Assembly: GCF_036321535.1 (NCBI RefSeq)
Contig: NC_087451.1
Coordinates: 27,838,001 to 27,902,000 of the forward strand
Direction of reading: 5' to 3'
Source: Camelus dromedarius
Lineage: Eukaryota
Length of the DNA: 64,000 bases
Part shown: positions 39,544-47,953 of the stretch, piece by piece
Layout of the letters: each line of letters starts with the position of its first letter
Numbering within the stretch: the stretch's first letter is position 1
Program-made: the position numbers and the translations under genes
The notes under the pieces: generated by a model
Seen by the model: the letters and a program-made list of their open reading frames with translations, nothing else
The model's database searches: none
What the model was told of the DNA's origin: nothing

Positions 39544-39824
39544 GGCGACCCGGACCCCGATCCGACGCCGCGGCGGTCCCTGCTGCGAGCCGGCGCGCCC
39601 CCGACTTCCGCTTCCGCCTCCCCCTCGGGCGCGCGCCCGCGTACGTCTCCGGGCGGGTCCGTGTGCTGCTGGGCGCCAGTTGGGCCGCGCCTGCTGAGTT
39701 GATAAGAGCCATGAACCAATGAGAAGGCAGGAGGTGAGACCTATCCAATGAGAGCGGGGCTGAGGGCGGGCCTTGCGTCGTCGCGCCGCCTAGATACGGG
39801 TGTCGGGTGAAGCCGGGAGCGGTG
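39544..39824. promoter_or_regulatory. Bidirectional promoter HGS/ARL16
   Basis: 281 bp between the two ATGs. Tandem ACTTCCGCTTCCG (ETS/GABP) near 39604-39616, CCAAT at 39716-39720 and 39745-39749, GC box near 39764-39770. Confidence 0.85.
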
Positions 39825-41650
39825 ATGTGTCTCCTGCTCGGGGCCACGGGTGTCGGCAAGACGCTGTTGGTGAAACGCCTGCAGACTATCCTTCCGCGCC
39901 AGGCGGGCGGGATAGGGGCTGGGGGACTCCGGGGGTACGGGGGCGCTGGTGGTGAGCGGGGCAGGGGCCTCCCGGGGCTGGAAGCGTCGGGGCCACGGTC
40001 CACCTGGGGCGGGGGACGCCCGGGGCAGGGTCGGGCCAGCGCTCCCTCCTCTGCCCGCCTCGGAGTCCTTGACCGCCTCGCACAGCTGAGCTCCCGGGAT
40101 GGGAAGGGCGACCTGGGCGATCCTCCCCCGACGCGGCCCACGGTAGGTGCCCGCCCTTCTGCAGCTTTGGGAGAAGTGAGTCCCCCTATGCGGTTAGGAA
40201 AGCGCTTTGGGTTCTTTTAAGTGGAAGCTGGAGTCCGGCGGTCGGTGTGTTCAGCACAGCCCTTGGGAGGTGGTGGATGTCACCGCAGGGAGTTTGGCTC
40301 CGACGGGACAGAGTCGCGGGGGATCCGGAGCCGCCCGCCTTTCACCACCGTTCAGACTGCTTTTGCTGCTGGCCGCAGAGGGCGAATCCCGGTCGTGGGG
40401 TCCTGGACTTATGGGAGCATCTTTAGGTCTCCTCTGTCACGGGTTCTGCCCTAGGGCCTGCGCACTCGAGATGGGGGTAACTCGCAGTGTAAAGGCTGGG
40501 CACGTTGCTATCCAGGAGTTCCCCGGGAAAGCGCTTGTGTTGGTCTCTCTGCAGCCTGGTTTCTTCCACAGGTGGGCACCAACCTTACGGACATCGTGGC
40601 CCAGAGCAAGATCACCATCCGGGAGCTGGGGGGTTGCATGGGTCCCATCTGGCCCAGTTACTATGGAAACTGTCGTTCTCTTCTAGTAAGTCGTTCTCTT
40701 TTGAACTTCCTTTGGGGAAGTATGTCCCCATTCCAGTATTTAATCCCCAATTTCTCTATTTTTGGGGTAGAGTTTGGGTTCCTGGGTGACTGTGCTAGTC
40801 AAGGAAACAGGGCCCAGGCTAGAGCTGCTTCCTTCTGGGGCTGCAGCCTGATCCTGCTCCCAAGCCAACATAAAAGCTCCAGGACGGCTTGTTGAGGGCA
40901 GTGTTTATTCTCTGTAGGTACCTGTGATGTCCACTCACTGCCTTGCTGCGCTGATTGTGTTTTTTCATTTTATGTTTGAATTGTATATTCCCCTGGTTCG
41001 TCCCATTCTGGCAAGACCTGTGCCCTAGATTCCAGGAGAAGTAACCTTCCTTGGAGAAGTAACGGCCCCACGAGTGAGAGACTTCCGTGGAGGTGCAAAC
41101 AAACAAGCAACGCCATCCTCCTGCAGGGGTCGCTCCCCTCTGCTCCTGCCTGTCCCCAGCCAGGCCTGTGATTCCAGGAGAGGAGAGCCTGCTGCAGGAG
41201 CCTAATCTCCACTTCCTCTTTCCCAGTTCATGATGGACGCCTCCAACCCCACACAGCTGTCTGCCTCCTGCGTGCAGCTCCTGGGTCTCCTTTCAGCAGA
41301 AGAGCTTGCAGAAGCATCAGTTCTGATACTGTTCAATAAAATGTGCATGTCCATGAGCCGAGAGGGGTGCAGGGTGCCCCAGGGCGGAGCTCCCGTGGGG
41401 CAGCTGGGAGGGTGGCTTGTGGGGGGTTGGGGTGGGCTCCTGGCAGCCCACCCTGACCGGGCGCTTCTCTCACTCCAGTGACCTGCCCTGTTACATGACC
41501 ACGGAGGAGATGAAGTCGTTGATCAGGCTCCCAGACCTCGTTGCTTGTGCCAAGCAGAGTATCACCACGGTGGAAATCAGCGCCCGGAATGGCACTGGCT
41601 TGTCGGAAGTGCTGCGTTGGCTCCAGGACACCCACAGAGCTAACGGTTGA
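39825..41650 (+). CDS. ARL16: ADP-ribosylation factor-like GTPase 16, 173 aa, 5 exons
   Basis: Exons 39825-39885, 40084-40142, 40572-40685, 41227-41342, 41479-41650. Total 522 nt. MCLLLGATGVGKTLLVKRLQKLSSRDGKG...PTVGTN...ILFNKIDLP...EISARNGTG. Intron 1 is U12-type. Confidence 0.95.
39886..40083 (+). other. ARL16: U12-type (minor spliceosome) intron with CT-AC termini
   Basis: 5' end CTATCCTTCC (consensus RTATCCTTT), branch point TCCTTGAC at 40066-40073, terminal AC at 40082-40083. Removing it restores LQKLSS. Confidence 0.85.
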
Positions 41651-42047
41651 CTTCAGGGCGGAGGAGCATGGCTGGCCTGCTCTATGGCAAGAAGGCAGAG
41701 GCGGCACTGCCTGGCTTCTGCGGTCTCTTGCTTCCATAAGGGCAGGATGGCCCAGTGTGAGCCCCAGGAGATGTGCTGAGTGCACGCAGGTCACAGAGCC
41801 TGCTGACTGTCCTCTGGCTCCTGCACTCAGAGAGGAGGACAGGCCTGCCCAGTGGCTTGTGTCCTGCTGCTATCCTGGGGCGGTTCTACTGGGGTCTGTC
41901 CCCCTCTCCCTAGGGGATCTGCTCTGTCTACTGCCGTACAAGTTCCAGCCTGTTGGGTTTCAGATACACCGACAGTGGGATCCCTGCAGACAACAGGAGG
42001 TACACGAATCAAGTGTTATAGCAAGAACTAAGCTTTGAGCTGGAAGC

Positions 42048-47209: not shown

Positions 47210-47953
47210 ACTTTCCAGGATTCCCCACAGGACAGGATGCCCCCCGTGGCCTGGGGTTGGCTGTTTCTGGCGGCACCCCGCCCCCCTGCGTTGGGTAAAT
47301 GCTGACAGCATGTAACGTCGCTGATGACCCATGAGAAGTCGGGGACAGCTTTCATCGTCAGGGAGACCTGTTCCGCCCAGTGCCCCATGGGGTCAGGTGT
47401 TACCTGTGCTGAAAAACCAGCCACAAATCAGCTTCCCCCGACCCCTCCTCAGGTCAAATGTACTTGCTAGAGCAGCCCACAGAACTCAGGGAGGCGTGTT
47501 CCTTACTAGATCCCTGGTTTATTACAGAGCACGACTCAGCCAGGTGGAAGGATACACAGGGCAACACACAGCAACAGGGCAGAGCCCCAGGCCCTCTCCA
47601 GTGCACTCCTCTCCCCAGACCTCCATGTCCGCCAACCCGGAGCTCTCCAAACCCTGTCCTTTAGGGTCTTACGATTGAGTAAACCACTAATCCGACCTCC
47701 AGGCCCTCTCCCCTCCCTGGAGGCTGGGTGGTGGGGAGAAGCTGGGACTGGAAAGTTCAGACCCTCTAATCACCTGGTTGGTCCTCCTGGCAGCCAGCCC
47801 CCATCCTTAGGTGGAGTCCAAAAGCAACCCATTCACCCAGCAAGAGACACCTTTGTTGCTCCCATCACAGAAAATTCCAGGGGTTTTAGGAGCTCTAGGC
47901 CAGAAATGGGGATGAAAACCAAATATATACCTACTATACATCACAATATCACA
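47210..47953 (-). mobile_element. MER21C-like LTR
   Basis: cacagaactcaggga...ggaagctctcc-like...ccctctaatcacctggttggt...aattccaggggttttaggagctct...accaaatatat...cacaatatcaca. The minus strand starts TGTGATATTGTG. Confidence 0.8.

Follow-up and report, generated by a model that had tools for sequence, protein, structure and literature searches.

A probable U12-type intron with CT-AC termini in ARL16 of the camel and other Laurasiatherian mammals

In the camel ARL16 gene, the first intron has the motifs of a U12-type intron but begins with C, where the U12 consensus RTATCCTT has a purine. This raises the question whether the C is the true base, whether an intron with CT-AC termini is really excised here and, if so, how this state arose and which spliceosome removes it. 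A reading of the sequence alone (here the sequence-only reading) had proposed a U12-type CT-AC intron in an otherwise intact ARL16 gene. We followed this up in the window, which is the complete stretch of 64,000 nucleotides analysed, as well as in orthologous loci and in sequencing runs. The proposal was borne out: C is the true base, RNA shows the junction in use and the coding sequence is intact.

Gene structure and splice signals of intron 1

Joining the five exons listed in Table 1 yields a complete ARL16 protein of 173 amino acids, with identities of 169/173 to Vicugna pacos ARL16 and 155/173 to Papio ARL16, showing similarity over the full length. ARL16 orthologues carry the Arf domain PF00025 and are Arf-like small GTPases. 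In six of the nine related loci HGS is located head-to-head upstream of ARL16.

Table 1. Features of the camel ARL16 locus; positions are those of the window.
Feature	Position	Strand	Description	Support
Exon 1, coding part	39825-39885	+	ATG (ATG TGT CTC ...) to last exon base A	
Intron 1	39886-40083	+	198 nt, phase 1, termini CT..AC, U12-type by motifs	
5´ splice site of intron 1	39886-39895	+	CTATCCTTCC; U12 consensus RTATCCTT with C at +1	
Branch-point sequence of intron 1	40066-40073	+	TCCTTGAC; presumed branch A 40072	
3´ terminal dinucleotide of intron 1	40082-40083	+	AC	
Exon 2	40084-40142	+	59 nt, starts AGCTGAGC	61-nt unitigs 40084-40144; joint to 40572
Intron 2	40143-40571	+	429 nt, GT-AG, U2-type by termini	
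Exon 3	40572-40685	+		RNA contigs, CDS
Intron 3	40686-41226	+	GT-AG	
Exon 4	41227-41342	+		RNA contigs, CDS
Intron 4	41343-41478	+	GT-AG	
Exon 5, coding part	41479-41650	+	stop codon 41648-41650	RNA contigs, CDS

Direct reading places the end of exon 1 (...CTGCAGA) at 39885, followed from 39886 by C-T-A-T-C-C-T-T. The U12 motif TATCCTT thus covers 39887-39893, i.e. intron positions +2 to +8, and the purine of U12-type introns at +1 is replaced by C, in the window as well as in the DNA or untyped runs and in the contigs of the RNA runs. The presumed branch A precedes the last base of the intron by 11 nt, which lies within the 10-15 nt expected for a TCCTTRAC element, and the short interval from the branch site to the end of the intron leaves no space for a polypyrimidine tract. 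The positions that the sequence-only reading had given for the intron, for TATCCTT, for the branch A and for the terminal AC were exact.

Exon 1 encodes MCLLLGATGVGKTLLVKRLQ and the first base of a Lys codon, and RNA contigs end or are joined at its last base. A cut after 40083 gives the product MCLLLGATGVGKTLLVKRLQ-K-LSSRDGKGDLGDPPPTRPT (...VKRLQ-K-LSSRDGKGDLGDPPPTRPT), while 3´ cuts one base earlier or later lead to a wrong frame or a stop. The claim that only this excision restores LQKLSS therefore holds among the three 3´ cuts tried with the exon 1 end at 39885.

By count, the two motifs are unremarkable: on both strands of the window TATCCTT occurs twice and TCCTTRAC five times, with shuffle expectations of 1.9 and 3.7, respectively. 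It is their joint placement that is remarkable, since one motif sits at the very codon in which exon 1 has to end, and its partner 11 nt before the frame-restoring 3´ cut. By our own estimate the chance of such a joint placement is about 1e-8, and both motif positions are held across mammals. The second TATCCTT of the window (GTATCCTT, 47547-47554, minus strand) precedes an AATAAA by about 40 nt and has the appearance of 3´ UTR sequence matching by chance, not of a second U12 donor.

The first intron base in other mammals

The orthologous intron is known as a minor intron in human and mouse. The MIDB supplement lists human ARL16 with AGG/ATATCCTTC (the slash marks the splice site) and the branch sequence GGGTCCTTGACC, and mouse ARL16 with AGA/ATATCCTTC (PMC6717393). 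In the work on CENATAC, the human intron is classified as U12, AT-AC, with the 5´ string CGGCTGCAGG/ATATCCTTCCGCGCG and the 3´ string ...GGGTCCTTGACCGCTTCGCAC/AGGTGA, and its retention rises from about 0.09 to 0.42 upon CENATAC depletion (PMC8280824). Retention of an ARL16 intron has been reported upon loss of ZCRB1 too (PMC13216214). The published human strings match the camel splice sites, showing that the camel intron is orthologous to an intron that depends on minor-spliceosome components. Camel, human and mouse introns share the position and phase, the 5´ splice site from +2 to +10 (TATCCTTCC), a branch site of the TCCTTGAC type placed 10-11 nt before the 3´ end, and the terminal AC, and they are short and GC-rich. 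They differ at +1, with A in human and mouse and C in the camel, and in length, with 198 nt in the camel compared to 98 nt in human and 122 nt in mouse.

The ARL16 loci of nine other mammals were obtained via annotated proteins and intron 1 was located in each of them; the length of the mouse intron found in this way, 122 nt, equals the MIDB entry. Of the 12 orthologue loci looked up, those of Bos (P0035), Rousettus (P0006) and Erinaceus (P0015) had no gene record, and the latter two were read instead via public protein isoforms that translate into intron 1. The seven Laurasiatherian lineages read as DNA (camel, i.e. the window, warthog, banteng, harbour porpoise, bear, pangolin and flying fox) all contain CTATCCTT...AC and thus C at +1, whereas mouse, manatee and brushtail possum contain ATATCCTT...AC. 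The published human strings likewise give ATATCCTT. Three more Laurasiatherians were read through proteins: in Rousettus, Erinaceus and Cervus a Thr codon (A + CN) follows VKRLQ, which gives C at +1. In the read-through proteins of Thomomys, Ctenodactylus, Myodes, Dugong, Saguinus and Pseudonaja it is an Asn or Asp codon (A/G + AT), which gives A. None of the ten species read as DNA has lost TATCCTT or the branch motif with its spacing of 10-12 nt, and the manatee 5´ splice site, with A at +1, is also identical from +2 to +10.

The C is thus neither a camelid oddity nor a possible base error, both of which had been considered in the sequence-only reading. It is old, fixed and common to the Laurasiatherian lineages sampled. 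By parsimony, this distribution would be explained if A changed to C once, on the Laurasiatherian stem, and the C has been kept since then, whereby Eulipotyphla are represented by a read-through protein only and Perissodactyla and Xenarthra lie outside the sample. It is likely that the +1 pyrimidine was fixed once in the Laurasiatherian ancestor, with the other splice signals remaining unchanged through the whole radiation of the superorder. On the accepted mammalian time-scale, this radiation is estimated to cover about 80-90 million years.

The last base of exon 1 is more variable. In the warthog it is C and not A (cagc/CTATCC; L002 Phacochoerus, 561-563), so that the junction codon encodes Gln and not Lys, and in primates it is G, resulting in Glu. 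The -1 exon base (A, C or G) thus differs between species, showing that it is free to vary while the intron stays fixed from +2 to +10.

Intron 1 of the camel is stop-free in frame over its complete length of 66 codons, and contigs containing it are present in two of the three RNA runs. A conserved coding potential of the retained intron was rejected, since the intron length modulo 3 varies between species and read-through hits a stop codon in 7/9 other species.

Use of the junction in RNA and alternative explanations

Contigs of three RNA runs (X39, X14 and X1) were aligned to 39600-41900. They are assembled and hence strandless, and the label of the runs is organism A or "reproductive system metagenome", not organism B, the source of the DNA; all contigs are in the 99%+ likeness class. 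The joint from 39885 to 40084 (CT..AC, skipping 198 nt), which had been proposed as a check of the sequence-only reading, is present in contigs of all three runs. It is reported with "both = 0", thus the position of the cut is unambiguous. All four ARL16 introns are seen spliced and the remaining joints of the gene are all GT..AG. The junction is also used in the camelid protein models that read LQKLSS, namely P0022 of Camelus ferus and P0023 and P0027 of Vicugna.

In X39 the spliced joint has a depth of 29.2, on a par with the exon 3-5 contig at 29.5, and contigs of intron 1 are absent. The corresponding depths are 23.5 for the joint and 12 for the intron 1 contig in X14, and 10.7 and 16.5 in X1. 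Contigs of the U2-type introns 2 and 3 occur likewise in these libraries, so that intron 1 is not demonstrably spliced worse than its neighbours; contig depth is, moreover, a poor gauge of splicing. The single-cell run X19, the only one with raw reads, contributed five reads, all at the 3´ end of ARL16.

Two further observations concern the downstream part of the gene. One joint in X14 leads from 40685 to 41016, into an alternative exon within intron 3 (41016-41092); the additional segment found in isoform X3 of Camelus ferus and in isoform X1 of Vicugna corresponds to this exon. In addition, the contigs of X14 and X1 contain one extra A after 41075 compared to the window.

We consider it very likely that ARL16 intron 1 is a U12-type intron that belongs to the AT-AC subclass and whose first base, originally A, became C on the Laurasiatherian stem, as parsimony suggests, and has remained C since. 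The motifs, the orthology and the conservation suggest that the camel intron is removed by the minor spliceosome; this dependence has been demonstrated for the human intron alone, the camel intron being known by its sequence and its junction.

It might be argued that after loss of the +1 purine the intron came to be removed by the major (U2-type) spliceosome or by a mixed machinery. Evolutionary conversions from U12 to U2 are known (PMC2831892), while none of the present data support such a conversion directly. The junction, however, has neither a GT or GC donor nor an AG acceptor, and only about 10 nt separate the branch motif from the 3´ end. The sequence-only reading saw no obvious U2 rescue from the nearby donors at 39935 and 39952, and this holds: both are out of frame with the CAG acceptor, the RNA contigs contain no joints from either of them, and no other joint between exon 1 and exon 2, U2-type rescue included, is present in the contigs of the three runs. 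In addition, the 5´ splice site from +2 to +10 and TCCTTGAC have remained intact throughout the Laurasiatheria sampled, the signature of a U12-type constraint that has persisted. Removal by the U2-type machinery is thus improbable.

Slightly less probable still is that the junction stems from an antisense transcript, for instance one from an upstream start of the head-to-head gene HGS, which would be spliced by the major spliceosome as a GT-AG intron on the minus strand, with the sense ARL16 mRNA made otherwise. CT-AC introns in annotations are often such antisense GT-AG artefacts, for example in fungi (PMC10639083, PMC7072748); they share the four plus-strand letters with the ARL16 intron, the contigs carry no strand, and the minus strand cagct/GTGCGAGG ... 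GGAAGGATAG/tctgcag has formal GT-AG termini. However, a purine-rich stretch (GGCGCGGAAGGATAG) precedes the minus-strand acceptor and the donor GTGCGA is weak. Antisense artefacts are flanked by reverse-complemented U2-type signals, whereas the ARL16 junction has U12 motifs on the coding strand, both conserved there in ten species. It is the only one of the junctions tried that restores the conserved ARL16 reading frame, and ARL16 proteins throughout the mammals imply it. None of the runs contains a different joint between exons 1 and 2, and in X39 the joint is as deep as the downstream ARL16 exons. The warning that aligners can assign CT-AC junctions to the wrong strand is fair (PMC10639083, PMC7072748), and STAR gives CT-AC its own motif class (PMC13149111); that such introns would be missed systematically does not apply to the camelid models named above, in which the junction is used.

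If the cut lay two bases further on, the result would be an AT-AG intron (ATCCTT...CACAG) and the product LQTLSS. A mouse protein derived from Celera (P0096, L007 Mus) reads LQNLSS and needs such an AT-AG junction. The camel contigs, however, read ...CAGA/AGCTG at the unambiguous joint, no joint from 39887 to 40086 is listed, and the sequence in proteins of camelids, bovines, bear and pig is LQ(K/Q)LSS. The shifted cut is very improbable and is refuted for the main product. In mouse itself, the AT-AC junction listed in MIDB gives LQKLSS, compared to LQNLSS in P0096.

A sequencing or assembly error, with A as the true base at 39886, would turn the intron into an ordinary AT-AC U12 intron, the state found in human, mouse, manatee and possum. 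The probability of this is close to nil. The sequence-only reading had proposed to check this base, and no A was found: every sampled 31-mer of 39780-40200 (100%) is present in each of 15 runs that are either DNA or untyped and come from several samples and studies, with organism B as the source of 14 and organism C of one, and the intron-containing RNA contigs show no letter other than C at this position. An unspliced contig of 258 nt (39856-40113), present in two RNA runs, differs from the window only at 39970. The same C is present in six other Laurasiatherian assemblies. Since the 31-mers are complete in 15 runs and the intron-keeping contigs show no other letter, the C at 39886 is the true base and a base error is excluded. 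Single-base differences between the RNA contigs and the window were found at 39970, 40411, 40463, 40610, 40643 and 41653, none of them in splice signals, and would fit a different individual or a sister species.

That the joined form is DNA of a processed ARL16 pseudogene contaminating the RNA libraries can be dismissed with similar confidence: the libraries also hold intronic sequence, and DNA can be present in them, but all contigs fall into the 99%+ class, the joint from 40685 to 41016 matches annotated camelid isoforms, and a joint depth of 29 without any intron 1 contig in X39 is unlike DNA contamination.

Precedents, recognition and annotation of the intron

The sequence-only reading regarded a natural CT-AC case as unexpected and took a 5´ C to be strongly deleterious according to mutational work. 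Both expectations have to be revised. Natural CT-AC U12 introns were first reported in 2010, for mouse and rat Trappc9 (Lin, Mount, Jarmolowski, Makalowski; PMC2831892). Like the ARL16 intron they occur naturally, have C at +1 and -1, a conserved U12 5´ splice site and branch site, and canonical termini in other vertebrate orthologues. They are located in a different gene and have been reported for two rodents only, whereas the ARL16 C is present in all Laurasiatherian orders sampled, which implies that it was fixed much earlier than in the Trappc9 case. Table S1 of Larue & Roy (2023) lists 24 CT-AC introns among about 73,700 conserved animal minor introns (0.033%), with the genes unnamed (PMC10639083). 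Rare minor introns with a non-purine at +1 are therefore accepted in published surveys (PMC10639083, PMC2831892).

The mutational work is that of Dietrich, Fuller and Padgett (2005) on a P120 U12 minigene, in which, as summarised in PMC2831892, the CU-AC mutant was spliced correctly with reduced efficiency. This mutant has the same terminal nucleotides as the ARL16 intron, and the correct sites were used in it. In that account it is an engineered state with reduced efficiency, whereas the ARL16 state is natural and fixed.

ARL16 intron 1 has all features of the natural CT-AC subclass, with C at +1 and -1, the U12 motifs, the junction in RNA and AT-AC orthologues elsewhere. It is an additional case of a very rare class that has already been reported. 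The new part is its fixation throughout the Laurasiatheria sampled; our literature search found no description of a CT-AC intron in ARL16 or of its Laurasiatherian distribution.

How such an intron might be recognised can be proposed from what is known about U11, which does not base-pair with intron positions +1 to +3 (review PMC3584512). With these positions unpaired, a C at +1 would leave recognition of the intron intact. The U11/U12 di-snRNP would recognise the unchanged 5´ splice site positions +4 to +9 and the TCCTTGAC branch site, and cleavage would take place between A39885 and C39886 and after C40083. The role of the +1 base falls to a later step, through U6atac and through the interaction between the first and the last intron base, a pair that was A-C in the ancestor and is C-C in the camel.

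Two classes of minor introns are distinguished, A-type (AT-AN) and G-type (GT-AG). Depletion of CENATAC affects almost all A-type introns, and the role of the 5´ adenosine itself was left undecided by the authors (PMC8280824). ARL16 intron 1, which is a CENATAC-sensitive A-type intron in human and has C at +1 with otherwise unchanged signals across the Laurasiatheria, amounts to a point mutant made by evolution. What the +1 base contributes to recognition, to catalysis and to CENATAC dependence could thus be examined with Laurasiatherian ARL16, and bovine, porcine and canine cells are easily cultured. If our interpretation is correct, the minor spliceosome copes in vivo with a C at +1 to an extent that lets a ciliary GTPase gene function, and cells from cow, pig, dog and bat compared to those from human and mouse would provide a natural allele series for the contribution of this base.

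There are also consequences for annotation. Pipelines that take CT-AC as minus-strand GT-AG, or that allow only AT, GT or GC donors, will break or mis-model ARL16. In many public models of ARL16 the translation runs into intron 1 or right through it, or junctions are invented (LQTILPRRLSS, LQTILPRWALSS), and several of them are labelled LOW QUALITY PROTEIN. Mis-modelled cases were seen in Phocoena (L001), Cervus (P0013), Rousettus (P0006), Erinaceus (P0015, P0017), Trichechus and Dugong (P0008, P0010) and Thomomys (P0012), thus the mis-annotation of intron 1 occurs in AT-AC and CT-AC species alike.
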